A stretch of DNA of 64,000 nucleotides from Trichosphaerium sp. ATCC 40318 (lineage: Eukaryota > Protista > Tubulinea). Shown piece after piece: positions 1 through 31,275 of this stretch (positions are counted from its first letter, which is position 1; each line of letters begins with the position of its first letter). A program made the position numbers and the translations under genes. The stretch is from assembly GCA_038496445.1 (NCBI GenBank), contig JALMLS010000329.1, positions 1 through 64,000 on the forward strand, given 5' to 3'. The notes beneath the pieces were generated by a model. The model ran no database searches and was not told where the DNA came from. It saw only the letters and a list, made by a program, of their open reading frames with translations.

Positions 1-2908
1 GAGAGGAAGAGGCACCAGGCTTCTCAGAAGAAGATTCACCATTGTTGGATGGTGCAAGTGCTAAGTAAGAATAACATGAGTGCTGAGTTATGTCAAAAAC
101 AAAAACAAACAAAAAAAAAAAAAAACTTCGAGCTATTTTTCAACAGGTAAAACACGTGTCAGAAACGACCGCGAGCTCGCGGTCTAATGTGAACACGTAA
201 AATATGTGTTCGCATTTAACGTACCTCGTTTTAGTCTTTGACTGCTTCTTGTGGTCATCTTTGTTGGTCCTGACCTTTTATTTACATCATGTTTTGATGT
301 AGAGGGCTGTGGTTTATCAGAATCTAAATAACATCAACTGGTACATTGGTTTATGAAGAAAAAAAAAAAAAATGAAAAAAAAAAGAAGAGAAAAACCAAC
401 ACATCGCGATCGTGTTCGTACCGAGTACGATCGGTCTGTGAGTTACTACACTTTCAAACCAAGGCTCACTTGATTTTTTGAACAACCCATGTGCTCTGCT
501 GCTTCTTCTTGGTCTTTTTTGCAGCTGGATTTCTTCTGAAACCTCATCCTCAACCTCATCCTCAACCTCATCCTCATCCTCATCTTCTTTTTCTTCAAAA
601 TCTTCTTCTTCATCTGATGTAGGAGGAGTTGTTTTAACCATAGGCTTCTTTTTCTTGCCTTTGCCTTTACCTTTTTTTTTATGCCTGTTTATGGCACTGC
701 CTTCACTTGCCCTTGCATTGGCAGTGTTTTTGGCCCTTGTATCTCTAAAAGGTAAGTAGGCATTCTCCAACATGGCTTCTAACTGAGGAGCTACAAAGGA
801 CATTAGTTTAAAAGTAAACTAGGGGAGAAAAAAAAAAAAAAAAAAGAAAAGAAAAGAGGTACGACCGCTACGTTCGACGAACAGGCGATTCGCGTGTAGC
901 GCCGAGCGCGACATTGGATGTGTAGTGTAAAAAAAAAAAAATGGCACTTACTTGCTTCTTCCACCTCAGGCAAATCCAAGCACTGCATAGACAACAGAGC
1001 AGTGTGAGAGAAGGAGAGCACATTTGCTGCTTGCTTGTACTTCATCTCTTCTATAACCATCTTGGGCAATTTTTGGCCATCTTCTGTGGTGCCGGTCCAA
1101 AGCAAGTGCAGGTCGTACATCAGAAGCTGGCGAAATATACACGGACGCAGGCTGTTCGCGAAATTCACGTGCTCCTCCTCGGTGCTCGTGTCCCACGAGA
1201 GCTCGTACCAACCGAGCTCGTTCAGCTGTCTCAAGGCCTCGAGTTAAAGTTAGATGAGGGTGGAGGGAGAAGAAAAAAAAAAAAAACAACAAAAAAAAAA
1301 ACAACAAAAAAAAACTGACCGATTGGTTTTTTTTTTTTTTTTGTACCTGTGTGATATATTGGCTGCAGTTCTTGTACCTCTGCAAATAATAAGATTGATT
1401 GGTCTCATGATACACCCTGCAGGTCAGTGCCTTGACAAACTAAATGTACAAGTTAGGCACAAACCCTTTTTTCAAAAAAAAAATATAAAAGGTACTTGAC
1501 TTACTGCTATTCTGGCATGGAGAGGTAACTCTGCCCATGCAGCATGAGCCAATATTCTAGTCCTGTAGCCCACTGGATGTTTGGTGTGCTATGATGAGAG
1601 TGTGAGTGAACAGCCGAAACTTTGTACGACACACAAAATGCGTGTTCGAAAAACCACGAGCTCGCGGTCCGTACTTCGACACGCGAAATGCGTGTTCGAA
1701 TAAAGACGAAAGCCTACGTACCACATTTTCAGCAGATGCAACCAATTCTGCTATCAGAGCACTGTCCAATGGCTCAAAAAACATGCCAGCCTTAACAAAC
1801 TGTTTGCTTTCTTTCCAGTTGGTCACATATGGAAAGTATAGATTCATCTTAACCAAAAACTAAACAAAACAATCAGTTATAACATACAAATAAAAAAAAA
1901 ATACAAGCTAAAAATCGTCGGTTTTACAACAGAGTATTTTAGTGTTCGTACGCGACCGCGAGCTCGCGGTGCGATTTACGACACGCGAAACCTCTGTTTA
2001 AAAATACTTGCAAAAAAAAAAAAAAAAAAAAAGATTAAAAAAAGATTAAAAAAAAACAACCCTCACCTCTTTCCATTCAGCAGGACTGAGCTGAGGTTTG
2101 ACTCTGCTGGCTCCCCATATCGCAAAATTCACCTTACCTATATCTCCCGCCTCCGCTTGGTAATCGAAGACCTGGCCCGCGTCGTCGCACCACATCTTGA
2201 ACAGGTGGCGGTAGCGATCCACCTTGGAGTCTGGAGTGGTCAGACTTTGCAGAAAGTTGATCTTGGTGCAGTAGATCGCTATCGCTTGCATCTTGGCGAA
2301 AGGATTTATCCACTCCACATTTTTGATTGCAAATTTGCAGGTTTTAGCTGCATTTTGTCTAAGGCAAACAAGTAAGAAACAATTGAACAATAAGGTAAGG
2401 AAAAGCAAAAAACCAGAAAAACAAAAAAAAGGTTCGTCGTTCGAGGTTTTTTTACGACAGGAAAATCTCGTGTTCGAACGCGACCGCGAGCTCGCGGTCG
2501 GTCGACCGACACGTAAAATAAACGTGTTCGAAAATATTCGCGAACGTACGCCAACTCTGTCAAAAGACAGTGTGCTCCATCTCCAACTCCAAAGCCAACA
2601 ATAGGGTCTGTATTGTACTCATCACACCAAACAATAGGCATAGGGCAAAGCACAAACCTTTTGGTAAAGGTTTCATAAATAGGCATCTTCTGTATAATGT
2701 TCCTGGGGTTGACTCCTCTGACATTCAAAAAACAAGCTATGTGTGACATGTCCAAGGGGCCTTTGTAAAATGAGGGCTTCTTCACTCTCAGATACTTCTT
2801 GTTGATAGAGTTGGCAGCAATCCCTCTTAGCAAGCCTTTTTTATTGATGACTTTATGATGCAGCCATTCAATTTATTGGTGCCTGACTTCATGTAGCTAC
2901 AAATAAAA

Positions 2909-2950
<42 letters not shown>

Positions 2951-3410
2951 GACGACGTTCGTTTTCGAACACGTAAACGCGTGTTAAAAAATATCGCGAA
3001 AATTGTTACTTACTCCACAAAGAGATGGAAATCTGAATCATTGCCAAAGCTCAAGGAATCTCTAAAATGGACCAAAAGAAGGGCAATGTAGTACCAAGAA
3101 TCTGTGACATGAAGTCCCATGGCTGTGTAGAATATGCCAGTCCAGAGTAGCACCTGCCAATACAACTGTCTCCACTTGCAGCTTATAATCCATCCATTCC
3201 TCTCCTTCTCCTCTACCTTCGATTCCTCATCTCCGTGTTCTCTCGGCATGGGTTCGTGCTCCTTGTAATCTCTGGTGTAGTTGCCTTCGAAGTGCATCGG
3301 CTTCCACCACTTTTCTTCATCCGAGGAGTAGATTTTTTTGACATCTTCTATAAACTTCTGCAGTTGGTCTACTCCTTCAACAAATGGAAATCTCTCCTAA
3401 AGAAACAAAA

Positions 3411-3443
<33 letters not shown>

Positions 3444-5113
3444 CTAAAAGCGACGATTTTACAACAGGATATTTAAGTGTTCGTACACGACCGCGAGCTC
3501 GCGGTCACACGTTCGACACATGAAAACTGTGTTATGAATACTTTAGGGAAAAAAAATCAAAAAATAATCAAAAAAAAAAAAATCAGAAAAAAAAAAAAAA
3601 ACAAAAAAAAAAAAAAAAAAAAAAACGAAATAAAACGAACACGGCCCGCGCGTGTATGTATCGGAAAACGTACCTTGAATGCTGCCTTCAGCTTGTTGTT
3701 AGGAGTTATTTGGGACTCCAACACATTATCAAAGCTGGCAGCAAAAAACCCATTTAGGCATCTCTTCATCCTCTTGATGGGCATGGTTTTAGCATAAACC
3801 AACTGGTTGGCTATGATAACACCTCTACATAGATAAATTAGTTGAAATGAATTAAAAAAAAAAAAAAAACAAAAAAATAAAAAAAAATATAAATGGCAGC
3901 TACGTTTACGAACATGCGCCGCGCGTGTTGCGTCGAACGCGAACTTTAATGGGTAAAAAAAAAAAAAAATGGACAAAACAAAAAAAAAAAAAAAAAACAA
4001 AACAACCAACTTACTCAAAACCAAAGATAACATCTCTGTGTTCTCCAATAAGAGTACCCACAATTTTTGTTTCAGTGTTGTGGTTTCCATGACTACTCAC
4101 AATCATCCAACCAGGGCTTGTTGGAGCTAAAAAGAGTATTAGAAGATGGCACATTAAATAAAAATACAAACACGTTTTTTCGTGTGGAAAATATGACCTC
4201 GAGCTCGCGGTCGGAAACGAACACATTAAAAACGTGTTACGTACACAACGGCAAGCTTGCAGTCAGTTATAAAGCAAGACTTTAAAAAAAAAAAACGGTT
4301 TTTAAAAAGTACACACTTTTTATGTGTACGAAAAACCGACCGCGAGCTCGAGGTCAGGTACGAACACAATAAACATGTGTTGTATACCATAAAGCAAGCT
4401 TGCAGTCAGTTATAAAGCAAGACTTTATAAAAAAACGGTTTTTTAAAAAGTACACACTTTTTATGTGTACGAAAACCGACCGCGAGCTCGCGGTCATGTA
4501 CGAACACGTAAAAAGCGTGTTTAAAATCGTACAGCGAGCTCGAGGTCTGTAAAAAAAGCAAAAACAAAAAAAAAAATTAAAAAAAAAGTACACAATTAAA
4601 TTGTGTACCAAAACCAACCGCCAACTAGCGCGACATGCGAACACGCGATATACGTGTTCTAATACCGCGGCGAGCTCGCTGTTGAAAATTGAAGCAAAAT
4701 AAAACAGTGTGAACCAAAACCAAACGAAAAAACAACGCACACGCGTTCTGCGTGTTACGAAACCCCGTTTGAGTTTGGTTCTACCATGCAAAAAAAACCG
4801 CATGGTAACGGAAAAATCGTACACATGAAAACCGTGTACAAAAACCGTCGTTTTTTTCGAAATTTACTTGAAAAAATAACAAATTTAGGGTTTTAAAAAA
4901 ACCATTTAAAAGCAAAAAAACCCCCTTTATTAGTCTTTAAAAATTAAAATAAGACTAATAAAGGGGGTTTTAAAAAAAAAAGAGTAAAAAAAAGAGGTTA
5001 GTACCTAGTTTTTTCTTCCTCCTGAGCTTGGGCTTACCATCAGCTTCTTTGGAGGGCTCATCCTCATCAGAAAACTCAATGTTTATGAGAGAGAGGTCTT
5101 CATCTGAGCTCAT
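1..5113 (-). CDS. Gene A: uncharacterised multi-exon protein (>820 aa, 3' end outside window) with a putative ParB/Srx-like domain and a Lys/acid-rich low-complexity region
   Basis: Hand-spliced GT-AG exons with consistent phases: 5005-5113, 4015-4126, 3674-3824, 3014-3396, 2550-2896, 2067-2358, 1722-1859, 1505-1588, 1347-1439, 952-1237, 470-790, 225-323, <1-60. Exon 5 is 1 nt short (frameshift near 2840). Motifs are VRGVNPRNI...GVGDGAHCL...INFLQSLTTPDSKVDRYR. The paralogue, gene B, has identical intron positions. The gene model is well supported; the ParB-like call is tentative. Confidence 0.8.
167..4679. repeat. Dispersed type-A palindromes GACCGCGAGCTCGCGGTC in gene A introns
   Basis: Copies at 167-184, 1653-1668, 1954-1971, 2481-2500, 3489-3506, 4195-4212, 4338-4355 and 4478-4495, plus degenerate copies at ~4534 and ~4670. 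All are intronic and often flanked by GTGTTCG...CGAACAC. Confidence 0.95.
4252..4530. repeat. ~140-bp direct tandem duplication in gene A intron 1
   Basis: gcaagcttgcagtcagttataaagcaagacttt...gaccgcgagctcg occurs at ~4251 and ~4394. Confidence 0.9.
4917..4971. other. Perfect 21-bp inverted repeat with 13-nt loop, gene A intron 1
   Basis: aaaaccccctttattagtctt - 13 nt - aagactaataaagggggtttt. Confidence 0.9.
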
Positions 5114-5411
5114 CCTTGATTTATGAAAAGTCAAAAAAGTAAAATGAGGCTTTTTTTCCCCCAATAATCGCGTTGAGAAATAGACAGGAATATTTCGTGT
5201 TTCGAAATGTGAATCGGAAATTTCGCCTGTTTAAAAAAAGTAAGAAAAAAATGAGAATTTGACAGTTTGCAAGATTGTTGATGAGGTTCTGGGTTTGTAA
5301 AAAACCCTATCTTGCTGTAACCCTACAGGGAGATTGTATGTGCAAAAAACATAAAAAAAAGCCAAAAAAATCGAAAAAATTTTACAACAGGGTAGAGTAG
5401 TGTACAAAAAA

Positions 5412-7315
5412 ATACGGTTGGTACATACTCCTAAACCCTAACCCTAACCCTAACTAATGTTCGGTGAAACCCTAGTATCAGTGAATTAAGGTTTTGTACA
5501 TAGGGCTTAGGGTTTTAACCCTAGTGTTCGCTGATTCTCGTTCAGTGAACCAACTACCAAAAAAGGCAAGTCTTGCTCATTAAGCGAAAATATACACTAA
5601 ATATTAAAAAACTTAGTACTTCTACAAAAACACCTCATAACTATACACCAAGGTAATATATATAACTCATACTTTATACACAATAAATTAAGGCATATGA
5701 CATAAGATACATCAAGCGCTACATGTATGATGATATACATGGCGAGTAATCAAAGCAACCCTAATGGATAAAACTATAAAATGGAAAAAAATTATTTATT
5801 TGCTATCACTACTAAATACCATGATCATTTAGAACCAAATCATTGTTATTTTCTATGTAGCTACAATATAATACTTTATAAAAATATATTGTATGATAAC
5901 ATAGATGATATTAAAACTGTTATTTATATCATTTTTTAGTACAAATAGCATTTTTTGTATGTTGACATTGAGAAAAAACCTTTATTTTAGCACTAAGATG
6001 ATATATTCTTTTATAAAAAGTATGTTATATATCTAATAATCAAATATAAAAACAATTATGTATGTAATTTTAACATAGGTGGCCTTGATAGGCCTATATA
6101 CCACAAAAAAAAATAAAAAAGCTATAATTCTCAATAAAACATCTGTGTCGCTGCATTAAAAACATCTATTGTATTCATGTTTCACAAGTCATCAACCACC
6201 ATGCTTGAGATCATGTATGTGCAATAGATTGCAAATATATGATATAAGTCCAACAAAATAGATGAATTACATAAACACACACCAAAAAATTATTGGCACT
6301 ATAAAAAGCTCTATGCCAATATAATTTTACATCCATGATAACATTCCTAAATGGATAGAAAGTAGCCATATAACAAAGATATATGGCATCAAGAGGTACC
6401 ATGGAGGCAAAGCTGTTTTTGGCAAAAATGGCATTTTTTTGGTTTTTTTACCATAAAGTATGATTGTAGGTAGCTTCATCAAGATCATCTATGTATATAT
6501 AGTAAATTATAAGATGATGCCATGATGTTTGTTAATAGGAAAATGAAGAATCGCACACCATAGATAATATATGGGGGGCCTGGTGCATCAACAAACAATG
6601 TCATCATTTTTGGCCAAAAAGGGCACGAACTCAAAATGCTTCTAAGCCTTCAAATCCAACCATCATTTTTGTTTTTATATAGGCTTATATAAAGTATATT
6701 AAGATGGCATAACATTTAAAGTAAATATTCATAGGGGGTATGGTGAACGACCACTAAAAAATGAAAAAATGCTGGAAATTTCTACATTTTCCTGATTTTG
6801 GATCGCATATATGCCACCCCACCAAATAAACTTATACCTCTTATTATTGCTATGCAAGTACTATATATCCTCAGTCGCCATCGATCCATCATGTTGTTGG
6901 CTGTGACCATTTTCGAAAACATGTGCTATAAAAGGTAAAACATATAAATGAACTAATAACTATTCATGATGCATAGGTATGACAAAATAGATAAATGCAT
7001 TGGATTCCTTGAGCAAAATGGCATACATGTATATGTATAAGTGAAACATAGGTGGTCGTGTAACTGCAGCCTCCAAGCAAAAATGTATCCAATTTTTTGC
7101 TAAAAAAATCCCATTGGAAAAATCAAAAAAAATCCAAAAATCAAAGAATGGCTCACCAAATCGACGTATACTGCTATAAAATCCTACAAACCATCAGCAA
7201 TCGGGTAATTTATGCCAATGTATAAGGTACAAAAAACAAAATTGGCTTAAGTGATATGATAAGGTATGCGGTAATGCATGGTTCAAATTAAATCCCTAAC
7301 CCTAACTAAATTAGT
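5412..7315. repeat. Non-coding block R1 with telomere-like repeats
   Basis: Starts atacggttggtacatactcctaaaccctaaccctaaaccctaa. Region 5412-5810 aligns with 10214-10617. A further ccctaaccctaa lies at ~7293. CpG-poor and CATG/TATA-rich. Confidence 0.75.
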
Positions 7316-7772
7316 ACATTATTTGGTGGATTTTGTACAATAATTCTGAAAATTCCATATTTAAGGGAATATTATGGTAATTCTATCAAAAATCCTGCCA
7401 TAAAAAAAAATAAAAATAAGAATTCTTCACAAATTACCTTAAAAATCCCTAAAACAAAGGAATTTAGTGGGATTTATATCCAAAATCCCGTTTTCATTTT
7501 ACCACTGTACATCTTGAACACTCTCCGTAGCTTGTCGACGAGCGAATCCTTGGTTGTCCTCTGCTCTATCTCGTTTATGGAGCTGCAGTACATAGAAATG
7601 GCATCCATCTGAGCAAAAACATTGATCCATTGAATGTTGTCACTTGGAATACCAAAGTTGGTATTTTCTTCGGCCATTCTTCTACATTGTAAAAGTCAGA
7701 CATAGAGGATAAAATAAAGATGTGGGAAAAAAAAGGGGGGAAGAAAAGACAAATACAAACGTGCGTCGACGC

Positions 7773-9473
7773 GGTCGCGAGCTCGCGACCTACGTACGAC
7801 AGGGAAATCTTTGTGTAAAGTCATCGAACGTACATTAGTGCTGAAAGCAAGCAGTGGGCTCCATCTCCTACAGCATAGCCAGGTAGTTGAGCAACCCTTA
7901 TGTGTGGAACCAAAGGCATTGGACACAACACAAAGGTTTTACCTGCGTTCGAACCCTTCTCCAGCTTCTGAATGATGTTCCTTGGGTTCACTCCTCTGAC
8001 ATCAAGAAAACATGCAATGTGGGACATATTCATGTGGTCAGGATACTTGTCAGGCTTTGTCACTTGGATCTGATGCAAATCAACAGAACCAAGAGCAACA
8101 CTTGCCTTCAGAACATCCTCTTCCCCATCAATTAAAATGTCACCATTGAGCATGTTTGTCTTTTTAAGAAACCTAAAGAAATAGACAAAGTGAGCGATGC
8201 GCCGTTTCACAAAGAAAAACCTGCAAACGCGGCCGTCGCGAGCTCGCGACCGACACGACGCAAAAAAAAACAAGTGAAAAAAATTAAAAGATTCGTGTAC
8301 TCTGTATATGCTCGGAAGTCCTTGTGATTTCTAAAGGACAGAGAATCTCTGAAAAATACCATCAAAATGGCACAGTAATACCAGGAGTTTGTAGCAGCAA
8401 GTCCCATTGCTGTAAAAAAAACACCTGTCCAAAGCAAAATCTGCCAGTAGAGCTGTCTGGTAACACAATTACCATACCAATAGAGATCAAAGTCAGCCAG
8501 TTGTTTTCTGGTTGGCTTTATGTCCTGCTTTATGGCCTCACTGAAGTAGGATTTGTGCTCTGCAAGCTTGTCCATAGGGCTCCACCATCCTCTAATATCA
8601 TCTTCATAGAGGCTCTTCACCTTATCCAACCAAGAAGTTAGACTGTTAAGGCTGATGAAGCAAGGGAACCTCTCCTACAGAAAATAAATCAGCGACGGTA
8701 GCGCGCGACGCAACAACGAAACTGAGAAAACGGAAATACGTACCCTGAATTCCTCGGACAGCTCTTCGTCCTCTGTGGTTTGGCTTGCAAGGACAGCCTC
8801 AAAGCCAAGATCAAAAAATTGGACAAGCTTTGTAGCCACTTGTGCCATGGGCATGGTTAAGGCATAGACAGTGCCTGCAACAGTGAGTTGTTTCCTGTAC
8901 AAACAGTCAAAGGTTATAATGAACAATGTAAAAAAAAAAAAAAAGTTCAAAAAAATTACTTACAGGAAGCCAAAGTGAACATCTTGGCTCTCAGGCAACA
9001 GAGTGCCAACAATTACTCCAGCATAGAAGTCATAGTCAGTGCCACCAACACAAATCCATCCAGTCTTAGTGGGCACTAGATAAAACATTAGAAAGGATTA
9101 AGATTGGAGTGGGGGGAAAACCAAATAAGTTGACAAAGGGAACCCTGCGTAAAGCAAGTCGCGAGCTCGTGACCTACGCGCGACAATTAAAAAACTGTGT
9201 CGACGCGGTCGCGAGCTCGCGACTTGCGTACAACAAAAAATAATTTGTGTCGACGAGGTCGCGAGCTCGCGACTAGCGTACGACATAAAAATTATTGCGT
9301 CGAGCCGGTTTTGAACTCGCGCAAAAAAAAAAGAAAAAATTGCTAAAGTTTCTTTAAATTGCGTCGCTGTAATTTAAACGCGACAATAAAACGTTTGTGT
9401 AACGCAAGTCGCGAGCTCGCGACCTCGACACAACAAAAAAAAATATGTGTCGAACGGATCGCGAGATCGCGAC
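7773..9473. repeat. Type-B palindromes (G)GTCGCGAGCTCGCGAC(C) in gene B introns
   Basis: Copies at 7773-7790, 8235-8250, 9158, 9208, 9258, 9408 and 9458. Confidence 0.95.
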
Positions 9474-9480
9474 TTGCGCA
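9140..9480. repeat. 50-bp-period tandem array (~7 units) of palindrome-containing repeats in gene B intron 1
   Basis: Palindromes start at 9158, 9208, 9258, 9408 and 9458, with degenerate units at ~9308 and ~9358. Confidence 0.9.
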
Positions 9481-9602
9481 AGGTTTAAAAAACTTTGTAA
9501 AACAATTTAGGAGCAGACCCAAGTTTGAGAAATACAAAGGAAAATTTTCATTGAAGAGAATTTCAAAATTAAGGGTCTTTGAAAAATACTCCCAAAAGCA
9601 AA

Positions 9603-9657
9603 AAAACCCCTTCTATTAGTCTTAATTAATTAAAAAAAGACTAATAGAAGGGGTTTT
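9603..9657. other. Perfect 21-bp inverted repeat with 13-nt loop, gene B intron 1
   Basis: aaaaccccttctattagtctt - 13 nt - aagactaatagaaggggtttt, with compensatory changes relative to the gene A copy. Confidence 0.9.
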
Positions 9658-10194
9658 AAAAAAAAAGAAAGGAGTTGTACCTTGTGTGCCTCTAGACCTT
9701 AGAGGATTCTCCTCTGGCTCCTTTGAGGCCTTCTTCTTCTTGCCCTTCTTCTTTTTAGATGCTTTAGGGCTGCTCATTTTGATTTATAAAAGTCAAACTT
9801 ATACAATTCCGCCGATTTTTAGGTCGACGGGAGTTCGCAAGGGGTATGCTTGTGTTACCGCATATGCTATTTGTAAAGATGCATTACCAAAAAACTTTGT
9901 TTGTGTAACTACCGAGATGTGAAAAAGGGTAAAAAAAGAGGAGAAAAATAGGAAAAAAACAGGAAAGCCATCTTCACAAAGGACATAAAAAAAACACTTG
10001 AAAAATACATTTACAAAAAATGGTTGCCTGTGAAACAGCAAAGTGATTTTTTTCTGATTTTGTAAAGTATCAGGGTTTTGACCTAGAACAATAAATGACA
10101 GGTCAACATTAGTGTTAATAATACCTGCACTGGTGCAAAAAAATTTTGAAAATAGATAACACAAGTCAGAACATGTGAAATGGAAAAAAAAAAT

Positions 10195-12290
10195 TACATA
10201 CTCCTAAACCCTAATACGGTTGGTACATACTCCTAAACCCTAACCCCTAACACTAACCCTAATGTTCGGTGAAACACCTAATATCAGTGAATTAGGGTTT
10301 TGAACATTAAAGCTTAGGGGTTTAAACCCTAATGTTTGCTGATACTCATTCGGTGAACCAACTACCAAAAAAGGTAAGTCTTGTTCATTAAGCGAAAATA
10401 AACACTTTATGAAAAAAAATTACAACCTTCACAAAAACACCTCATAACTATACACCAAGGCAATATAAATGGCTCATACTTCATACATAGTAAAACAAGA
10501 TATATTAGCATAATATACATCAGGCACTACATATATGGTGATATACATGGCACATAATCAGGACAACCCTAATGGGTAGGCCATAAAATGGCAAAAAATA
10601 TTTATTTACTATCATTATGCTGAATCACACTCTAGTTTTTATCACCATGTAAATATGGCTTTATAACCATGAGGTACATATATAATGGGATACTTGATAC
10701 AGCAAAGGGGGCTGGGGGCATTGGTGAACAGAGCAAAAAAAATGAATTTTTTACACATTTTTGGTAAAAAGTATTAATGTGGGTAGCACCATCTCATTCA
10801 CCGAACGAAATATGTTTGGTATCCCCATGATGGCACAAATATCAATTTATTGAAAACCAAGTTTCACAACTCTGAGATGGCTGCCATACACCATATGTGA
10901 TCCAAAGTGCAAAGCAACATTTTGGGCAAAAAATGACGAAAAACTAAAATGGCATGTAGGTAATATTTACATTTACCATGTTACTATCCAAATACAAATA
11001 TATGAGGCATGTATAACAACTATGCCATATAGGATAAAAAATCACATGATGTATGGTGGCGAGTGACTGAAAAACCCAAAAATGGCTCTGACTTTATATA
11101 TTTCGCAAATTTCGGATCACATATATGCTGCCCCACCATTTCGATTGCATATTCATAATCTATGGCAAATTTGGTGACTAAAAACACGGTTTCGCAATCA
11201 TGAGACAATATGGCAAGGGGGGCCCTCATGCAAAAAGAAGTTGCTTAAAAATAAGCGATGAACGCGCATTCGAATCACCGAAAGCCATGACCATCTATGA
11301 CCAAATCATTGCTTGCATCATGTAGTCAGATTATAAGCGCATACAAAAAAGTTTTGTGGGGTGTTATAGGTGATTTTATAATCCCATTATGTAAGCAATC
11401 CTTAGGCCAACGTGATTTTGCCGCTAAAAAGTGCCAAAAAGTGGTAAAAATGCTGCTGAAAACGCTATCTCATTATGAAGGATACCTATGATAATTTTGA
11501 TGCCATATTTGGCTTGCAACGGCCATTTAAGGGCTAGAAACATATTGTATATTTTCATGGGGGGCGCTTGAAGCCATATTTTCGCTCAGCTAGAGGGCTC
11601 GTTTTCATTATAACCCTAAGATTATTTTATATCTCATAGTCATGAATAGATATGAAAATAAACAATATCTCATTATGTTGCCATGTATGTATAGATATGA
11701 ATTTAAATTACAGTTTAGCTACACATGATATACTAAAAACTTTGTGTATATGAGAAGTGTGCATACATATTTTTTTTGTAAAAAAAAAGCCAATTACAAA
11801 CTCAAAATTGCTTACATCTATATAACTCATCACTATGGATACCTACAAATCAATTATTGCTTGTACCATGTTTATATGGCCTAATAACATATATGTACAT
11901 ATATAAAGTAATTAAAAATACATTTGTAAATGCAACCTCCAAACACAACTGAATGGTAAAAATATTTCAAAATTTGCAAAAAAAAAAAGTTCACGTGTCG
12001 CTCACAGGCCATGTAGTGTACGAATATCATTTTCGATGCTGCACACCATAATAATACATGCCTGTGCCTAGCGGCACAGCCATGAAAGTAGCAAAATCTA
12101 ATAAAATCGAAAAAGTAGAGGTTTAGGTAACCTTAACCTTAAACCTTAATTGGCTTCTAGGGTATAACCCTAATCGCTATTAAAGTTGACTAGGGTTAGG
12201 GTTATATGCTAGGCTCCATTAGGGCTAGGGTTAGGTTTATAACCCTATGGAGAATTAGGGTTAGGTTTTTGGTATTAAAGCTTAGAACTA
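10195..12290. repeat. Non-coding block R2 with telomere-like repeats
   Basis: Second copy of the R1 left end, with a 20-nt terminal duplication at 10195-10214. Scattered internal similarity to R1 (e.g. ~6800 vs ~11112). Mixed-orientation TTAGGG/CCCTAA cluster at 12120-12270. Confidence 0.75.
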
Positions 12291-12710
12291 ACTTTGTATC
12301 AAGTCTTAGTTTGTATCACAGCTTTATACATTAACTTATTTCTTCACATTTTTCCTCATTTTAGTATTGTGTATTGTTGTTTAATTACAAATATCCAATT
12401 ACCTTCAAAGCTTGTATGTTAATTATGTTATTAAGTTTATTTTAACATCTTTTTTTGTTTGAGTTCTTTTACATGTAGGTTTTGTAGTACTTTTTATTTT
12501 GTTAACTTTAGTTTATATTCACACTTCACCAATACTTTACAAAAGAATCTTTATTTGCTGAGGAGTATGTACTATACTTACCCAAAAACACAATACAAAC
12601 CTAGCTTGTTACCAACTACCAACAAAGATAAATGGTATACAAGCTGTATTTAACCAACACAAGGATATTGATAAAAAATGTATTTGTTTACAAGTTCACA
12701 TGCCAACAGT

Positions 12711-15700
12711 TTAAAAACTCTCAGAAAGGGTACGGAATGATGTTTGCATATCATCATTGAGCTTCTGGAACTTAGCAACAAGTTCTTTTTCGCCATCAAT
12801 TGGATCCTAAGAACAAAACAGTTAGTAGATGAAAAAAAAAACCCAATGTACACATATATATAACATACCTCGAATTTTTGACCAGAGAGACGTTGGCGGA
12901 TGCTAGCGGTGTGTGATTTAATGACACTCCAGCTCATCTTGTTGTCAGCGGTAGACATCTCCAATGCCTATATAGCATGCAATTAATATACAGTTCATTG
13001 TATTTTTTTTGTTTTTTCTTTGCGAGCGAAAAACCAACTCTTGTGATGTGGTACGTACTTGTTGAGCGTGTGTGTAGAAAGCGATGAAATTACGCAACAT
13101 CCATACGGTTTTATAAAACGGACAGTATTTATCATACGCAGAAAAACCGTTTTGCTGGAGGTAGTCATCCTTTATGAGCTTGGCTACTTCCAATGTAATT
13201 TTATCAGACTCAGCAAGTGAATCCTACAAACAATTCGGTTAATCGTGCTACTTGCAAAGCGCAAATGGCGAAACGTGTTGCAGGTTTAATTTTTTTTGAG
13301 CTGTAGATAAAAAACGTACTTTGCCGACCAATTGTACAATTTCTGTCAAATCCTCTTCTGTTTGCAAAATTTCCTTTGTCTTGGAACGGAGAGGAATAAA
13401 ATCGGAATCAAATTCCTACAAAAAAGAAACGTTAGCACAAATATCAAAATAAGAAAAAAGGAGCGGAGGGGGAGTTACCTCATAGAACGGTTCGAGGGCA
13501 TTGACGTATTTGGAGTAACTGAAGAGCCAGTGAATAGATGGAAAGTGCTTTCTTTGTGCCAATTTTTTATCAAGACGCCAAAACACTTGCACAATACCCA
13601 AAGTAGCAGCTAAACAGCCAAGTCAAACAATGTAACACTAAGCAAGCACTTTCGAACAGTTTCGTACATGTTACAGGCTCAGTGAAATCACCACCAGCAG
13701 GTGACACAGCACCCACAATTGTTACAGAACCCTTACGCGCTGGGTTACCCAAGCACACAATTTTACCAGCACTACTCAAAAAATTAGCCCAACAAATCAC
13801 CACAGTCACAATTTAAAATTAAGGTTACGCACCGTTCGTAGAAACTGGCCAACCTAGCAGCTAAGTAAGCTGGGTATCCTCTATCGGCAGGCATCTCCGC
13901 AAGACGACCAGAGATTTCTCTCAAAGCCTCAGCCCAACGAGAGGTGGAATCTGCCATCATAGCTACATTATAACCTTGATCACGGAAATACTCAGCGAGA
14001 GTGATACCTTGGACCGAATTAGCAACAGAATGATTTGTATCAAAAAAAAAAAAAAAAAACAATAATCAAGCCATGAGAATAACTTGAAAACTAAGAATAG
14101 GAAAGGAGCTCACCAGTGTAGATAGATGCTTCTCGAGCAGCTACAGGCATGTTTGAGGTATTAGCGACCAATGTTGTACGTTGCATAATAGATTGCTCTT
14201 TGCCCTGAAATAACGTTAATCAAAAACAGTACCAGAAATATAATTTTGAAAAAACACACCTTCAACTTAACACTAAGTTCTGGGAACTCCATTAGTACTT
14301 CTGCCATCTCATTACCACGTTCTCCTAGCGCACATTTAGTAAATTCATCCAATCACATGGTGGTTCATTTTCGCCCCAATAGGAAATAAATAAAAAAAAA
14401 ACAACGCACCACATCCAACGTAAATAATAACATCAGAGTTTGAGAACTTGGATAGAGATTGGGAGATAACTGTTTTACCGCAACCAAAAGCACCAGGGAT
14501 GGCACAAGTACCTCCTTGAATGAGTCTAAAACAAAAAGCATAAGCACCGCATTACAATGAAAAATAGGTAGAAAAAACAGAAACAAAAAAACTGTGTTAC
14601 ATACGGGAACAGAGCATCCAAAACGCGTTGACCAGTAAGCATAGGGTAGTCAGCTGCAAGCTTATCTGTAACAGGTCTTGGTGTACGGACAGGCCAAGTG
14701 TGGCTCATTCCATATCCAGTTTCTTTACCGTCAAATTCTAGTTTCACTACATCATCCTACAAAACCAAAATATTAATATTAATTAATTTACTGCGCAAAA
14801 ATAAAGGATAAGTTTAAAAAAGCATACATCGAGAGTGTATTCGCCTTCAGGAGCGATCCATGTGACACGTCCGTACGCTCTTGGAGGGATCATGATACGA
14901 TGTTCAATGAGATCGTTTTCATCTACCAATCCTACGATATCACCACCAGTGAGTTGAGAACCAACCTGTATTGATCATTAGTGAAAAAGGTCGGCTTAGG
15001 GGGAAAAAAAAGGCCATGCGGATGTATTTCACAACTGGTCAAAAAAAAACTTCAATGTAAAAAAAAAACTCGTCAAAACATGCTCTACAACACTCAGAAA
15101 AAAAAACACACTAAACTTTAGACGAAGAAAAGCCAAGGCGATTTTCAAAGGAAAATTTCAAGCGGCAGGCTCAGACATTTAGAGCAAAAAGATGGCAAAT
15201 AAGTGTACCTGTACGTCTTTGTTTGGTACAAACAACCATTTTTTTGAGTGATCAAGTGGCACGGTTGAAATACCCTTTGGAATGTAAATACTGCCAGACA
15301 TTTGCTTAATTGCTTGCAATGGACGCTGAATACCATCAAAAATGTTGTCCATGATACCTGAAATGGAGGGTTAAGAGTGCCATACTAAAGGAGGAAAAGC
15401 GATGCCCAAAACTTTGCTGTTTGTACAACAAAAAATAAATACAAGAGTTTTACGGCTCAAAACATTTTTGTAGGCGTTGTTTACAAAACAAGAGCGAGCG
15501 CGATAAGTTGTGATGATAGTAAGAAAAACAGTGGTTTGACAAGAAGTGAAATAATTGGGGTTCAGAACCAGGCAAAAATCCATCAAAAGTTAAACGCAAA
15601 CGTACCAGGACCCAATTCTACAGAAAGTGGTTTGCCTGTTCTTAATACAGGGTCGCCTACTTGTAAACCAGCTAATACTAGCTTAGAAAAACGGTTTGGT

Positions 15701-16031
15701 GCCACAGGTACGTACAGGTATCTTCGTATACTTGAATTGTAGCCGTGTCAGCGTCGAGACGGATGATCTCTCCGACAAGCTCGCCGTGTCCCACACGCAC
15801 CTATTTTAGCTTAGTTAGTGCCTGAATAGAAATATTGACGCTGATCCAGTGTGAAGGCGTACCAATTCGTACATAGCACTTCCAGACATTTCTTCGGCGA
15901 TGACGACTAAATATAAATGTTACCTAAGCGTTTTACGTGACATTTAGCGCACCAGGGCCTGATACAGAAAAGACGACACCATACTTGGCGCCCTCTTTCA
16001 AGCCTTTCCCTCCTTGCTTATTGTCACTCAT
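12711..16031 (-). CDS. ATP6V1A: V-type H+-ATPase catalytic subunit A (multi-exon)
   Basis: [67 protein letters not shown]. Start at 16031, stop at 12711. Confidence 0.97.
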
Positions 16032-16399
16032 TTGTTGCGTCTTTTAAGGGGCAAGTAAGATTTAAAAAACTTTGTTGGACCACTCAATTTTTCTCTGTAC
16101 TTTTCTCAACAGATAATCCAGCAATGTCGTATGTCTTTCGCGTCACACTAAGACCGCACAAAACATAAAAAGGGGGGCGAAAACCTTTGTTTGCGACACG
16201 CTAACTGTTACAAAATTCCAACCCACAAACCCAAAAGCCCAAAAGCGCTAAAGTCCAACGCGTATTGAAAGCCAAATAATGAAATAGTGGGTTAACTCAA
16301 AAAATACAATTTGTTGTTGATGTTAAGACGCCACATGGTGACACCAAATCGTTTTGTGCTAGCTACAAACAGTAATCTAACTTTTTTATGGGGTTGTAC

Positions 16400-19204
16400 T
16401 TATAAGTCTACAACGGCTAATGTAGCAGACCACCCAGGACAACTAATTTTCATCGTTGCATTTTGCACTGTTACAGAACCCACATTTGAAAGTCGCTCTT
16501 TTGCAGTAAACCTAAACAACGTGGCCTGGCAACAACAATGAGAATATCAATACTCAATAACAATCTAACGCACGTGTCCAGTGATTGTAACAGCTGAGGT
16601 ATCAATAGTTATTGGTACTGGGTCTGGTTTTTTGTTTACCATAACCACAAACATTTTTGCTTTTTGCTTGTCAACAAATGTGTAAGCACTGGCAACATCA
16701 ATCTCTGAGGAAGTGGATTTAATGGTGTGCCCACTGACGCTAGACCCTTGCAAGAATAAGAACGTGCTAGCAAGTTTTGCCGATACCTTTGCCATCATAG
16801 TTTAAAAACAGCAAGTATGCTTGTTCAGTCAGGCTACCAACATTTGGTACTGACCAACGTGTTGATGCATGTAAACCCATCTCAGCGAATACACCAAGTG
16901 CATCAACATTTGTTAGAGCACCTGTGATAAGGTCGTCGCCGCCATAACTAAATTCCGAAATTGAAGTGCGCAGTCCAGGTAAATGCTTTGCTATCCACGT
17001 GTTTACTCTAGCGAGAATATGGACTTTAGCAACAAACCATGTGACAGTGGTAAAAGTGGGATCCCATAGTGGTCTTGTACCCCTTAAAGGTGTGAACACG
17101 ATAAAAGTAGTATCACTGTAAAACTACCTGAATCGTAGGAAAGTAGTTACTGGGTCCAAGTCGTTGTTTGTAAATGGTACTACATAAGGATACGTGTGAA
17201 TATCAATGACATCAACAAGTTGAATCCCTGTTGCTTTTTTGTGTTCTGCTATCTTGTATATGTACCTACGATAATAAGATGAAGGAAAATAAACGTGATG
17301 AGTTTGCCAGTGCTGTACCATTCAATAAGCGACATGTTACCGTGAGCTAGGCGATCTGGTCCAATTTTACATCCATCTGCTGCTGAGAACATATAGTTGC
17401 ACCACCCTCTTACGTTTAGGTTAATTTATGATACAAATACACATGCTCACGTTGTCACTGGACCAAATATTGTTGAAGCAGGAAAATTGTGCTTAAGAAT
17501 GCTACCATACGCCAAGGTTTTATTCCAAAGTCTAGCCCACAAGTCAGCGATTGCACTAGTAACAAAACGTACTCATCATAGGTAAGTTTCTCAGGATGCA
17601 CATCTCTGTGCGTGCCACTCCAAAGCCCTGATGTATGTCAGCAGAGCTCAAAATACACAGAAAAAATTCCGTTGCAAATTGGTACCTGGTTCATTATCCA
17701 ATGCAAACCAACGAACTGATCCTGTCCCGTGCAGCTTGTCAATGTGATTTATCCACTTCACATTGTATGTTGGAGGTGTCTCAACACTTGTATCATGTGG
17801 GTCATTACCAGTCACAAACGAACCATCCGGCTTGATACCATTACCACAATCAGTACGGTATCGATCAACACTTTTTTGAGCACCATACTTTTTAACAGAA
17901 AACCCACATCTAACGTTATTGTCAAAAAATAAACTAGATAAAAATGAGACTTTTGTGGTGCCTAATTTCTCTATCAATTGGTCTCCAGCCAATCATTGGT
18001 GTCAATAACATTACTTCACTGTTAGCTCTGCAACATAGTTAAAGAACAGTATATACGCAGAATATCTGAAGAAGAGCATACTGCGTGGAGTTATAAATAA
18101 ATCCATCAGAAGTTGTGTTTGTTGGCCATTGGGCGTTTTGAGTTGGCATGTTTTCGTAGAACCAATCATGACAAAGATTAGCTGTATCAATATCCCAGGC
18201 GTATCTACTTTTAACCTCTCCTCCCCATCTGTTAACTCTGTATCGGCAACTTTTCAGGTGCCCCAATGTAGCGTGATTTACACCAAATAGGTATGGCGAA
18301 AGAGGAATAGATACGGAAGTGTCAATCGTAACAGCTACTGGTCCAGCACGTGGAAGGTTAATACTGAATCCTACACTGCTAAAATAAATAGTATCTGTTG
18401 TGATCGCCTGGCCATAAGTTAATACTTCACCCTTCACCCCATCCGTACGCACGGTAATGGGTTTGAATTTGAGAATGTACAGACTCGTGTTATTATTGGC
18501 TATGCCGAATTTGGCGAAAGGAATAGTTACTTGATAAGTATCTTGTTAATAACGCAAACGGATAGATTACAAAATGAGAAATGAGTCACCTTGTAACCAC
18601 GTGTTAGCAGGTATCTTGCTACCTATCACCTCTGACAGTTTCAAAGCCTTCCCAACTTCTAGTCGTCAATGTTAATTGCTCTGGGCCTACGTACCACTTC
18701 CTGAATTGAGTTCCAATTCTACGTCTTGTCCACTTGTAGAACCACCGCTTATCCTTCAATTAACGTCAACGTGATAGTAGATACACAGGACAAGGCAACT
18801 AACCAAAAATTAAGATCCGCTAGATACTTTGTTTCACCAACAAAGTTCCCGTGTAAAACTAGTGTCGATTCGCTTGGCTTGAAGCTTAGGGAATACGTTG
18901 TTCCCGCTCTAACGTGCTACAGTTTCGTTATGTTGTCAGTGGGTTGCCGCTTCTTACAAAACACAGCTAGAGTAGTAGTTACACGCACACTAGTGTCCTT
19001 CATGTTTACACCTGAACCTGACCAACTCTGAAAACCTCGCTCTAATGTTCCTATACAACCCCTTTTGAGCCCTTACACCGGCGCCATTGTGGTAAATGTT
19101 ATAAATAACATACCCGTTTGGCCGTTATAAACGGTGACATTTGCCATCTGAGCAAATACGCAAGATAAAAAGCATAGTAATAAAGCAGTCCCATGTAAAT
19201 TCAT
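16400..19204 (-). CDS. Secreted glycoside hydrolase family 44 (endoglucanase/xyloglucanase) with N-terminal CBM-like domain
   Basis: Signal peptide MNLHGTALLLCFLSCVFA. GH44 motifs NRWGG..SRYAW, DWFYEN, WFALDNEP, DIHTYP and ISEFSYG...DALGVF. Confidence 0.85.
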
Positions 19205-28959: not shown

Positions 28960-31275
28960 ATGCACCTGACTCAATTGCAATTGCTTGTGGTCTATTGTTT
29001 ATTTCTCCTCCCAAAGTACTCTGCTACGCAAATAAACGCTGCTGGTGGAACGTTTGCAGCTCCTATACTTCGATCGTGGATGGCATCGTTTGAATTATTT
29101 GATAGAAACTTTGCCACACCATTCACTTACGAAGGAACTGGAAGCAGCATAGCGAAGGATAGAATAACGCCAAACAGTGTAGTGTGGGCTGGAAGCGATT
29201 CGGAGCTAACTACTTCCCAGTATGCCCAAAACAGCGGTCTTCAAATGTATCCTATTTTAGGCGGTGCTGTATCGGTTGTGGTACGTAGTATTTGCCATTA
29301 GCTCTTTTTAGCGGAGAATTAAACATACGCGTATGTTGTTTGTATCTATTTTATATTGCATCAAAGCGCTGTCATGTTGTATCATCATGCAGTAAAGAAG
29401 CAAATAGGGAGAAACAAGCAAAAACAGTATTCTCATAAAATAGTTTTCTGTCAATTTTCTAAACTGCAATATTCGGATTCTAATTCCAATTATCTTCACA
29501 GGTTCATATTCCAGATTTGGCTATCAACCAGACAATCGTCATAGAGCGCGACGTACTTGTAGACTTATTTAGTGGAGCAATATCTTTTTGGAATGACACG
29601 CGATTGGTGGCTAAAAACCCACTACTCGCTAATGTATCGCATCAAATTATCCCAATAGTTCGGTCAGATGCCTCCGGAACAACATTCGTTTTCCACTCTG
29701 CACTTATATCGTTTTCACCTCCTCTTGGGGCTATGTACGGACCACCAGATGGTAACTTCCCTTTTATGAACCCGAACATTCAAAGATACGAAGGAAACAG
29801 TGGTGTCATGTCGGGCGTTAACATTGTGCCTTACAGTATTGGGTACGTAAGCTACAATGTCTTCTTAGAACTTGGAATATCAACAGTGTCTGCCGCTAGC
29901 CTTATCAACAAACGAGGAGAAACAGTTTCTTACAATCTTGATAGCGCCCAACGAGCGCTAAATGGGGCTGAATTTCAACCCAACTTCTATTCAAGTGTTG
30001 TCATTGATACTAATGTAACAGGTGTTTATCCTATAGCTACATTCACATACGTAATTATTGACAAGGATTGGAATATGCAATGTCAAAATCAAAGAGATAC
30101 ATTAAGATTTTTCACTTGGTGCCTTACGAGTACAGAAGCTTCTAACACTGCGTCCTCTAGAGGATATATACCACTTCCTGAAAGCGTTGCAATGCGTGTT
30201 ATTGACAAATTGCATTTGGTAGAATGTCAAAAACAACTGCTAGTTGGTAGACGTATACTTGGTATGAAGTTTCCAGCAGGGTCAGTAGTTCTTACAGTTG
30301 TTATCGTTATATTATTAGTTTTTACGATGGGTGTACTTGCCGCTTGGGTATGGAACCCACCCCGCCGACATCAAGTCGTACGTCAAAAATTGTTTTTTAA
30401 TGACACCTAATTTCTTGTTTTTTTACCATTCATTTGTAAACCTAAAACTTGATGTAACACCGAATACAGAGTATTGTATTACTTCCGCTAAATTTATTTA
30501 GTTGGTATACGGATATACACTCATTGCCGGTGTTACCCTTGCTATGATCTCCTCTATACTTTGGCTTCTTGAACCTACTTCTACTGCTATTTGTCAATTA
30601 AGGTTGTGGGTTGGGTGTTTATCCGTTTCTTTATTCCTTGGTTCTACGATAGGACGATCTTCAATTGTTTTGAGAATGCTGTCTGTTTTTGTAAGAAAAA
30701 GTGGATACAGCAAACAAAAACGTGGATTGATCTTATTTTTGATAGTACTTGGAGCAATAGTATCAGTACAACTCGTATTACTATGTGTATGGTCTGTGGT
30801 TGATACTTATGAAAGATCATTTGAGAGCACAGATACACTCTCTCTTGAAGCGAACTACACATGCTCATCTAAGCATATGGTTATCTGGGGTACACTAGAA
30901 CTTGTCTATTTCTTTTGTATTAAACTTTGGGGTGCTTTTGTTGTATACTCAACTTGGTCAGTTAAGAGCCGTGTAGTTTCCTCAAGGTGGCTTTTAATGC
31001 ATCTGTACAATTGTGCATTGATATTGGCGGTGGGTACATTGCTTATATTTATTGTTGGTACTTCAGAGTTTGCTATACACCACACAATAAGTGTATCAAT
31101 ACTTGTGTTGGCACAAAGTGCTATTGTTGCTTTCTTGTTTCCTGATCTTATCTTACCTGCACTTACAAAGGCATATGGTAATACTACAGAGAACAAGCCA
31201 AGTGGAAATGGAGGTATTGAACGCTCTCATTCATGTCACATATCACGACAAGATACATCTACAGAAGAAGAATAA
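28960..31275 (+). CDS. Class C (GABA-B/Grl-like) 7TM receptor with extracellular PstS phosphate-binding domain
   Basis: Three exons (~28960-29280, ~29502-30377, ~30502-31275). Signal peptide, then PstS motifs GGTFAAP, GTGSS, AGSD, RSDASGTT, IGYV and YPIATFTY. Seven hydrophobic helices follow, with the class C-like CQLRLW..LSVSLFLG. Confidence 0.85.

Follow-up and report, generated by a model that had tools for sequence, protein, structure and literature searches.

Several described systems share features with the locus that we report here. In bacterial ParB-parS modules, 16-bp palindromes with a family-specific sequence are clustered within or next to the gene. Endogenous hairpin-RNA loci and intronic miRNA clusters, such as the Drosophila hpRNA loci and the tandem pre-miRNA arrays in introns of host genes, consist of hairpin arrays with a conserved stem core, variable loops and one sequence across the copies. 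Rnt1p recognizes AGNN-capped stems, some of which lie in or at introns, and its cleavage competes with splicing and removes unspliced RNA (PMC3287188). Introners and MITE-derived introns in Micromonas, Aureococcus and Amoebophrya are hairpin-forming repeats that fill spliceosomal introns, such that introns within a genome are alike. Their carriers are many unrelated genes; inverted repeats mark both ends of the intron, and direct repeats span the exon/intron boundaries (PMC7789003). The sister (stw)introns of Hypoxylaceae are highly symmetrical, could form double-stranded intron RNA, lack target-site duplications and fall into families of related introns. They occupy new positions in unrelated genes, and their symmetry spans the whole intron, with 45-55-nt terminal repeats (PMC8469720).

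We analyzed a 64,000-nt stretch of DNA from Trichosphaerium sp. ATCC 40318, here called the window. It contains two tandem paralogues, A and B, which a first-pass annotation had interpreted as ParB-like genes that carry parS-like palindromes in their introns and are located on a mobile element. The genes and their upstream elements are the following:

1-5113, minus strand: gene A, predicted splice model with GT-AG introns, at least 13 exons and at least 825 codons
5113-5005, 4126-4015, 3824-3674, 3396-3014, 2896-2550, 2358-2067, 1859-1722, 1588-1505, 1439-1347, 1237-952, 790-470, 323-225, 60-1, minus strand: exons of gene A (high to low)
2830-2872, minus strand: interval with a 1-nt frameshift in gene A exon 5, the simplest site being the A6 run at 2837-2842
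7474-9777, minus strand: gene B, predicted splice model, 6 exons with an intact 426-aa frame
9777-9681, 9075-8964, 8894-8744, 8674-8301, 8172-7834, 7681-7474, minus strand: exons of gene B (high to low)
5114-5130, minus strand: short motif directly 5′ of the gene A ATG, core ATAAATCAA
5411-5811: upstream block of gene A, 84% identical to the block of gene B
10213-10617: upstream block of gene B, about 435 nt before the ATG

All introns in the splice models of both genes are GT-AG, and the first five introns of A and B match in position and phase (1, 2, 0, 2, 2). Gene A is truncated at its 3′ end by the start of the window. A single placeholder base in exon 5 restores its open frame of 825 codons, and the frameshift in this exon is either a homopolymer assembly error or a genuine disabling mutation. 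Gene B ends where A continues for roughly 400 more residues, and lacks the C-terminal half of A. Neither a further paralogue nor the missing 3′ half of B was found elsewhere in the window. In an alignment of the two proteins, the common motifs are MSHIACFL.VRGVNPRNIIQK, FVLCPMP, GDGAHCLL and IN....TT.DS.VD..R. Between A and B, 68% of fourfold-degenerate sites differ, which amounts to saturation, and the introns cannot be aligned apart from the shared elements described below. Both proteins have lysine/arginine clusters near the N-terminus, and the protein of gene A, beyond this basic cluster, has a low-complexity C-terminal tail that is lysine-rich and acidic. A transmembrane protein was considered and rejected, since the maximum hydropathy over 19 residues is 1.38, which is too low. 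We regard A and B as a two-member tandem family of orphan proteins that are probably nuclear.

The upstream block common to both genes is 405 bp long. In gene A, its gene-proximal end has TTAGGG-type (telomere-like) repeats and breaks off abruptly, some 300 nt short of the ATG. The ATAAATCAA core is identical before the ATG of gene B (9778-9793). The common block and the pre-ATG motif suggest that A and B are regulated in common.

Palindromes of two types, one in each gene, occur at these positions:

167-184, 1652-1669, 1954-1971, 2482-2499, 3489-3506, 4195-4212, 4338-4355, 4478-4495, 4530-4547: nine A-type palindromes, GACCGCGAGCTCGCGGTC with up to 3 mismatches and GAC..GTC flanks, in gene A introns 12, 7, 6, 5, 3 and 1
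7773-7790, 8234-8251, 9157-9174, 9207-9224, 9257-9274, 9407-9424, 9457-9474: seven B-type palindromes, GGTCGCGAGCTCGCGACC with (G)GT..AC(C) flanks, in gene B introns 5, 4 and 1

When up to one mismatch is allowed, the core CGCGAGCTCGCG occurs 15 times in the 64-kb window, where 0.01 occurrences are expected by chance. All lie between positions 170 and 9471, and there is no copy in the remaining 54 kb. All 16 palindromes are intronic and are spread over nine introns spanning both genes. None is in an exon, in the roughly 5 kb of adjacent intergenic DNA, in the upstream region of either gene or in the other 54 kb. If the surrounding non-coding DNA were hit evenly, rough arithmetic puts the probability of intron-only placement (9/9 independent) at about 4e-4. 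Introns 2, 4 and 8-11 of gene A and introns 2 and 3 of gene B have only degenerate hairpins, or nothing. The perfect palindromes have lengths of 16, 18 or 20 nt. Besides them, the window has just one GC-rich perfect palindrome of at least 14 nt, and this one overlaps an A copy. The core count relative to expectation and this palindrome survey led us to reject chance or artefact as their origin.

The 12-nt core is identical in A and B. Between copies within a gene, the 18-mers are 93% (A) or 88% (B) identical, whereas the 30-nt flanks are only 56-58% identical, and this difference indicates that the core is under constraint. Considered together with the saturation of fourfold sites, it supports the view that the palindromes are kept by something other than neutral descent. 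At palindrome positions ±7 and ±8, A has AC/GT and B has GT/AC. In the gene A array, two imperfect copies, at 4195 and 4338, have exactly reverse-complementary sequences, and could therefore pair perfectly with one another, even though neither is a perfect palindrome by itself. Corrected for the early end of gene B, the frameshift in gene A and the introns without a palindrome, the first-pass description is confirmed by the scans: the two paralogues do have the same intron positions (for the first five introns, and including the phases), the motif series it quoted is found in both proteins, and perfect palindromes of 16-20 nt with a common core and gene-fixed flanks occur in the introns of both genes and not in the rest of the window. 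That the palindromes are tied to this gene pair and are paralogue-specific, with symmetric flank changes, is likewise supported.

The palindromes are part of composite elements, which consist of a hairpin, then GTGTYCG-N4-6-[16-20-nt palindrome]-N4-6-CGRACAC, then a second hairpin. The first introns contain additional structure:

4195-4575: tandem array in gene A intron 1, period 140-143 nt, 2.3-2.7 copies, the unit being hairpin, palindrome, hairpin
4917-4971: AT-rich hairpin with a perfect 21-bp stem in gene A intron 1, 34 nt downstream of the exon-1 donor
9146-9498: two tandem arrays in gene B intron 1, period 50 nt
9603-9657: matching hairpin in gene B intron 1, 24 nt downstream of the exon-1 donor

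The gene A hairpin has a predicted energy of -30 kcal/mol (z -8.4) and is followed by a U run on the transcript; its gene B counterpart has -32.6 kcal/mol (z -7.2). Of the 21 stem positions, 19 are identical between A and B, and both differences are compensated on the opposite arm. Pairing of neighboring copies in the gene B arrays can give 21-bp duplexes, and no local fold in the window is more stable than these. For single elements, the folding energy ranges from -24 to -35 kcal/mol, and z reaches -4. When 80-nt local folds are ranked by stability across the window, the first nine places are all taken by these intronic elements, and 16 of the first 20 are located within positions 1-9800; this stability goes well beyond that of shuffled controls. 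Covariation is absent among the A copies (term about 0), whose predicted pairs are simply invariant and so are uninformative for or against RNA structure. Arms of the same copy are not more complementary than arms of different copies, a comparison by which we rejected copy-specific compensation in the long arms. The few mismatches within palindromes show no preference for G-U pairs on the transcribed strand. In Rfam, no family matched at the gathering threshold, and there were only sub-threshold chance matches.

Outside the window, a metagenome scan with the intron-1 hairpin yielded 52 unrelated hairpins, none of them with the core palindrome or the A/B protein. A viral scan with the 18-mer gave matches that show no sign of a relationship, with no A/B protein and at most three core copies per locus. 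In the literature, the 12-mer appears only in unrelated primers and oligonucleotides.

Searches with every sizeable exon matched no family in Pfam (E up to 1) or in NCBIfam and PHROGs (E up to 10), and there was no match to PDB sequences (E up to 10). In particular, no ParB, Srx or DUF262-type family appeared, and none of the exons yielded a DNA-binding domain. Real members can escape profile searches, as even the P1-type ParBs of the comparison below have no precomputed ParBc (PF02195) label. An hhalign comparison of the spliced A/B alignment with 60 P1-type ParB proteins gave a probability of 0.1%. A profile of exon 5 had one weak match (E 1.2e-5) among 1.84 billion cluster representatives. 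This was a tandem-repeat protein in which a 25-residue stretch is repeated five times, and we judged it to be probably spurious. Exon 4 had no match in a 5.8-billion-cluster database, and degenerate-pattern scans with exons 5 and 4 found nothing in JGI metagenome contigs or IMG/VR. AlphaFold2 models of exon 5 alone (from a two-sequence alignment; pLDDT 30.6) and of exon 4 alone (all-helical; pLDDT 51.7) were too low in confidence for a fold search. Judged by these sequence comparisons, the A/B protein is an orphan without a detected relative.

The proposal of a ParB/Srx-fold protein with its own parS-like sites on a mobile element is accordingly very improbable in our view. It draws on a motif-level resemblance: VNPRN, a short linker, CPMP.V and Y/F.VGDGAHC..A occur in what we take to be the consensus order of the ParB N-terminal domain. 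The sites, moreover, resemble parS in that they are clustered palindromes of about 16 bp with a family-specific sequence, in and around the gene. However, the DGxHR / GxxR box has cysteine in place of its defining arginine in both paralogues (GDGAHC), and this replacement, the lack of any profile or PDB match and the hhalign result leave the ParB/Srx identity unsupported. Unlike bacterial parS, the sites lie in a eukaryotic host and exclusively in introns. A ParA partner is absent, and the window shows no helix-turn-helix and no gene for a partner ATPase or a transposase. No evidence was seen for the suggested mobile-element location either. The other 54 kb contain at least 10 genes, and the identified neighbors are ordinary chromosomal ones (a V-ATPase subunit, a GH44 gene, a kinase and a GPCR). 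For one neighboring ORF, the closest match reaches only 46% identity. We saw no terminal repeats or target-site duplications at the locus, whose left boundary is outside the window, and no transposase, integrase or RT gene and no further gene copies in the window. The 405-bp upstream repeat with its telomere-like ends may bear on the question of mobility. Binding sites in DNA and selfish foldback repeats, by contrast, are live rivals to the reading that we favor below. The former amounts to the ParB/parS proposal without the ParB label: the palindromes may form a homotypic cluster of DNA sites that a dimeric protein recognizes by their sequence, which is possible, but we lean against it. The binder may be the gene's own product, which would then be autoregulated, with specificity co-evolved in each paralogue. 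Perfect palindromes of 16-20 bp whose core is far better kept than the flanks are consistent with such sites, as are blocks conserved as sequence and not just as pairs, symmetric half-site changes between the paralogues, arrays in the first intron (where enhancers often lie), the N-terminal lysine/arginine clusters in proteins without a transmembrane segment, and the common upstream block and pre-ATG motif. On the other hand, neither upstream region has a site, one element per intron over a 5-kb gene body would be unusual for an enhancer, and no exon encodes a detectable DNA-binding domain. Proximity is the sole link between the gene product and the sites. Binding of the palindromes by the A/B protein is purely inferential.

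A selfish MITE-like or introner-like foldback repeat without host function is an explanation that we hold to be similarly doubtful. It would have entered one intron per gene and spread locally by tandem duplication, gene conversion or intron duplication, and the paralogue-specific flanks would be founder effects. Proliferating symmetrical introns (PMC8469720) and introners with inverted repeats (PMC7789003) are precedents. Introns 3 and 6 of gene A are 75% identical over 204 nt, much of which is a T-rich tract, and introns 12, 7 and 5 match one another; the foldback architecture of about 90 nt and the tandem arrays also fit. Introns 2 and 3 of gene B are short and empty whereas intron 3 of gene A is filled, which makes the elements younger than the common intron positions. 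Yet dead copies should decay evenly, which contrasts with the 88-93% identity of the core versus 56-58% in the flanks, and both the core and the positioned intron-1 hairpin are common to paralogues with saturated silent sites. Other genes and spacers in the window have no copies. Introners, as noted, recur as near-identical introns in many unrelated genes, which we did not find in the remaining 54 kb; here there are only two carriers in 64 kb, and the intron positions are older than the elements. The inverted repeats are central rather than terminal, and boundary direct repeats are at most 3 nt and correspond to the AG/G splice consensus. The Hypoxylaceae introns differ as well, in that the present element is a 16-20-nt perfect core within pre-existing introns of one gene family, with gene-specific variants. 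A further reading, which we consider unlikely, is a closed recognition loop in which each paralogue co-evolves with the palindromes in its own introns, the specificity having been reset symmetrically after duplication. Either the protein would bind its own sites, whether in DNA or in pre-mRNA hairpins, or palindromic small RNAs from the intron-1 arrays would match only the introns of the gene that they come from. We know of no precedent for such an intron-embedded self-recognition module in eukaryotes.

The best reading, although we hold it only tentatively, is that the palindromes are arrays of intronic hairpins that act at the level of the transcript. The sequence itself shows that the elements are present, are confined to introns of these two genes within the window, have the conservation pattern described and can fold. 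We infer that RNA rather than DNA would be the active form, as well as any role of an RNase III. The composite elements would be kept by selection in the introns of the tandem A/B family. During transcription of an intron, a palindrome would fold into a GC-rich hairpin with an AGCU loop. Since the copies within a gene are the same self-complementary sequence, any two of them could also pair with each other, giving perfect duplexes of 18-21 bp that would be strongest in the intron-1 arrays. Enzymes of the RNase III type (Dicer-, Drosha- or Rnt1-like) may act on the resulting double-stranded RNA, and would thereby yield small RNAs specific to the gene or cut the unspliced pre-mRNA. Either would regulate the gene in cis and leave the mature mRNA unaltered. 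If copies pair in this way, the copies within a gene must be identical, and pairing on a single strand demands palindromic symmetry. The paralogue-specific flanks would be symmetric (compensated) changes, fixed in each gene separately.

Several observations argue for transcript-level hairpins. All 16 copies are in introns, nine in total across both genes, and this intron-only, roughly one-per-intron spread fits a role in the transcript at least as well as protein binding. The top nine local folds in the window are these elements, including intron-1 hairpins with z of -7 to -8. The 12-nt core is identical despite 68% divergence at fourfold sites, and contrasts with its flanks within each gene. 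The double changes at ±7/±8 are symmetric, two pairs in the 21-bp hairpin are compensated, and the two imperfect copies at 4195 and 4338 complement each other exactly. Rnt1p provides a precedent (PMC3287188), as the AGCU cap fits AGNN and the elements are likewise intronic. However, only the RNase III of budding yeasts is known to recognize AGNN. The cut made by Rnt1p is 14-16 bp away from the loop, a distance at which the stem here is already imperfect, its perfect part being 7-8 bp long, and sixteen copies in two genes are without precedent. Additional points against this reading are the lack of covariation among A copies and of extra complementarity between same-copy arms, mismatches without G-U preference, and the absence of an Rfam family at the gathering threshold. 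A dimeric DNA-binding protein, moreover, would lead one to expect the symmetry and the identity of the copies just as well. Compared with hpRNA and intronic miRNA clusters, the perfect palindrome is at the hairpin apex, such that both arms have nearly the same sequence. Copies are also scattered singly in later introns.

Repeats in introns are commonly dismissed as junk or as selfish introners. In this locus, a perfect palindrome has been kept although silent sites are randomized, and the changes in its flanks are symmetric and fixed in each gene. This pattern points to a sequence-specific function, exerted by intron DNA or RNA and confined to one gene family. If that function is autoregulation, whether by pairing, small RNAs or the encoded protein, the A/B family would be a compact natural case of specificity diverging after gene duplication.

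The introns of two neighbouring paralogous genes hold a family of GC-rich palindromes in a pattern that is real and statistically overwhelming. We built splice models for these genes, called A and B, from GT-AG introns and from the similarity of the two genes to each other.

From 5113 to the window start, minus strand: gene A, at least 13 exons, 3′ end beyond the window start
From 9777 to 7474, minus strand: gene B, 6 exons, encoding an intact 426-aa protein

Over 419 aligned codons the two proteins share 42% identity, and introns 1-5 agree between the genes in position and phase (1, 2, 0, 2, 2). Very strongly conserved protein blocks include MSHIACFL.VRGVNPRNIIQK and GDGAHCLL. Gene B lacks about 400 C-terminal residues of A and stops shortly past the point from which A continues (7474-7520). 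Since there is no trace of A-like 3′ exons downstream of B, this paralogue is naturally truncated; its frame is otherwise intact. A 1-nt shift breaks the frame of gene A in exon 5, within 2830-2872 and most simply in the A6 run at 2837-2842; the cause is either a misassembled homopolymer or a disabling mutation, which would make A a pseudogene. No third paralogue occurs within the window.

Allowing at most one mismatch, the 12-nt palindrome core CGCGAGCTCGCG occurs 15 times across the 64-kb window (chance expectation 0.01), always within 170-9471. With its flanks, the core forms an A-type 18-mer, GACCGCGAGCTCGCGGTC, found nine times between 167 and 4547, and a B-type 18-mer, GGTCGCGAGCTCGCGACC, found seven times between 7773 and 9474. 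The types differ symmetrically: positions -8/-7 and +7/+8 are AC..GT in the A type and GT..AC in the B type. Perfect A/B palindromes are 16, 18 or 20 nt long. When every perfect palindrome of at least 12 nt in the window was scanned, those that were GC-rich and at least 14 nt long proved to be these elements, plus one that overlaps an A copy. All 16 copies are intronic: gene A has four in intron 1 and the others in introns 3, 5, 6, 7 and 12, gene B has five in intron 1 and the others in introns 4 and 5, and there are none in exons or in the spacers upstream of A and B. These window-wide scans confirm the description in the first-pass annotation, which reported gene-fixed flanks and no copies elsewhere in the window.

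A larger composite element is centred on each palindrome. In transcript order it consists of an ACAC..GTGT hairpin, GTGTYCG, the palindrome with 4-6 variable bases on either side, CGRACAC and another hairpin. The composite has the capacity to fold back over about 90 nt, and the apex of the palindrome hairpin is AGCU. Intron 1 of gene A contains a tandem array with a period of 140-143 nt; the arrays in intron 1 of gene B have a period of 50 nt, and neighbouring copies there can form 21-bp duplexes. A sliding 80-nt fold scan covering both strands of the window placed 16 of the 20 stablest structures within 1-9800, and the top nine are all intronic palindrome elements. Two array copies (4195-4212 and 4338-4355) have one symmetry-breaking change each and are mutually exact reverse complements, so they could pair perfectly with one another.

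Genes A and B are fully diverged at silent sites: fourfold-degenerate positions in identical amino acids differ at 45 of 66 (68%), which is saturation, and the introns are unalignable outside their few common elements. The 12-nt core is nevertheless identical in the A-type and B-type families. Among same-gene copies, the 18-mers are 93% (A) and 88% (B) identical, whereas the 30-nt flanks on either side reach 56-58%. Dead repeat copies would decay evenly; given this contrast, the core is kept by selection, or by repair or conversion focused on it. On these sequence comparisons, neutral descent gives no explanation of the palindrome pattern, and we reject it. The proposed tie of the palindromes to this one gene family, to which they are private, is supported.

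The genes also have other non-coding features in common:

4917-4971: perfect 21-bp-stem AT-rich hairpin in gene A, 34 nt past the exon-1 donor
9603-9657: perfect 21-bp-stem AT-rich hairpin in gene B, 24 nt past the exon-1 donor
5411-5811 (A) and 10213-10617 (B): 405-bp upstream block, 84% identity

The hairpin stems are the same at 19 of 21 positions, and the remaining two are compensated on the opposite arm. The upstream block is conserved far better than A/B silent sites, and its gene-proximal end has (TTAGGG)n-like repeats and stops abruptly. It may represent the end of a repeat or transposon, or a regulatory block common to both genes. Further degenerate telomere-like repeats occur at 12100-12280. 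A short motif lies immediately 5′ of the ATG in both genes. Intron 9 of gene A (1264-1348) has facing A-rich and T runs that can form a long A/U hairpin, an inverted repeat of a different kind from the palindrome elements.

The surrounding genes are ordinary:

12600-16050, minus strand: V-type ATPase catalytic subunit A gene, recognized by eye from its GAFGCGKT P-loop exon
16767-18452, minus strand: glycoside hydrolase family 44 (GH44) gene, several exons
28960-31275, plus strand: PstS-like phosphate-binding domain, then a family-3 GPCR seven-helix domain (7tm_3)
36194-36327, minus strand: U4 spliceosomal snRNA gene (Rfam RF00015, 82.6 bits)
37920-40326, plus strand: pentapeptide-repeat exon run (Pfam PF00805, E 7e-41)

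A kinase and an RRM protein are further neighbours. The V-ATPase introns match those of A and B in their GTACGT donors and T-rich tracts but are palindrome-free, and are therefore a useful internal control for normal introns here. GH44 is a mostly bacterial family, so this gene may be horizontally acquired. The PstS-like domain has bacterial best relatives (~35% identity), and by sequence the protein looks like a phosphate-sensor-type receptor; its nearest match in the databases reaches only 46% identity, which indicates a poorly sampled source organism. No boundary direct repeats beyond the splice consensus were found at the A/B introns. Such neighbours give no support to the suggested mobile-element setting; this negative result covers the locus up to the window start, beyond which its left end lies.

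The encoded proteins are, as judged by sequence searches, orphans among the collections searched. No exon matched Pfam, NCBIfam or PHROGs, and PDB sequences gave no match at E up to 10. Exon 4 had no match in a 5.8-billion-cluster database. The exon 5 profile, run against 1.84 billion cluster representatives, had one weak match, to a tandem-repeat protein over a 25-residue stretch, which we judged spurious. Metagenome and viral contigs, scanned by pattern, yielded no A/B relatives. The proteins have no transmembrane-grade hydrophobic segment. Lysine/arginine clusters at both N-termini, and the lysine-rich and acidic tracts that end A, are compatible with a nuclear protein without being proof of one.

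The first-pass annotation took the proteins for putatively ParB-like and the palindromes for parS-like sites. The order of the motifs VNPRN, CPMP.V and Y/F.VGDGAHC..A does resemble that of the ParB N-terminal domain. Genuine P1-type ParBs lack a precomputed ParBc label in the database, so negative profile results leave room for a remote ParB/Srx fold. Beyond the lack of any profile match, hhalign gave a probability of 0.1% against 60 P1-type ParB proteins, and GDGAHC has, in both copies, a cysteine where the ParB signature arginine is expected. AlphaFold2 on single-exon inputs gave pLDDT 30.6 for exon 5 and 51.7 for exon 4, values too low to judge a fold by. The ParB-parS identity is thus not borne out, and we regard even a remote ParB/Srx fold as very improbable.

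Our tentative preference is that the elements act in the transcript, as intronic hairpin arrays. They are strictly intronic, occur about once per intron along the gene and are absent upstream; they form the strongest RNA structures of the window; and the two imperfect array copies complement each other exactly. Identical, self-complementary copies could pair with each other, which alone would demand both palindromy and within-gene identity. Yeast RNase III recognizes an AGNN loop, and its cutting of stems that lie within or at introns competes with splicing (PMC3287188); the AGCU apex fits that loop. The capped stems might undergo RNase III-type cleavage that competes with splicing or, alternatively, the 21-bp duplexes might be processed in a Dicer-type manner. 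Counting against a role in the transcript, within-gene pairs are invariant, without covariation, and the arms lack copy-specific compensation. If the palindromes were instead DNA sites bound by a dimeric protein, perhaps the A/B product itself, that would account just as well for the symmetry and for the conserved sequence blocks, but not for the intron-only spread, and the A/B exon searches detected no DNA-binding domain; we consider such sites somewhat less likely than hairpin arrays.

We give about the same weight as to DNA sites to a selfish foldback or introner-like repeat, locally amplified. Whole-intron similarity inside gene A, together with the short, empty introns 2 and 3 of gene B, does show that the elements have spread among introns that already existed. 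A purely neutral repeat is at odds with the contrast between core and flanks, with elements common to paralogues saturated at silent sites, and with their absence from all other genes of the window. Known introners and symmetrical sister introns differ from the A/B elements in that they sit in unrelated genes, extend over entire introns, or have repeats at their ends along with direct repeats across the boundaries (PMC7789003; PMC8469720).

The link between gene family and palindromes is supported, and its mechanism might be hairpins in the transcript, which we put forward tentatively, or, somewhat less likely in each case, protein-binding sites or a selfish repeat. The elements are akin to known intron-resident hairpin or palindromic repeats; what is unusual, at this single locus, is their restriction to one gene family and their symmetric, gene-specific flanks.
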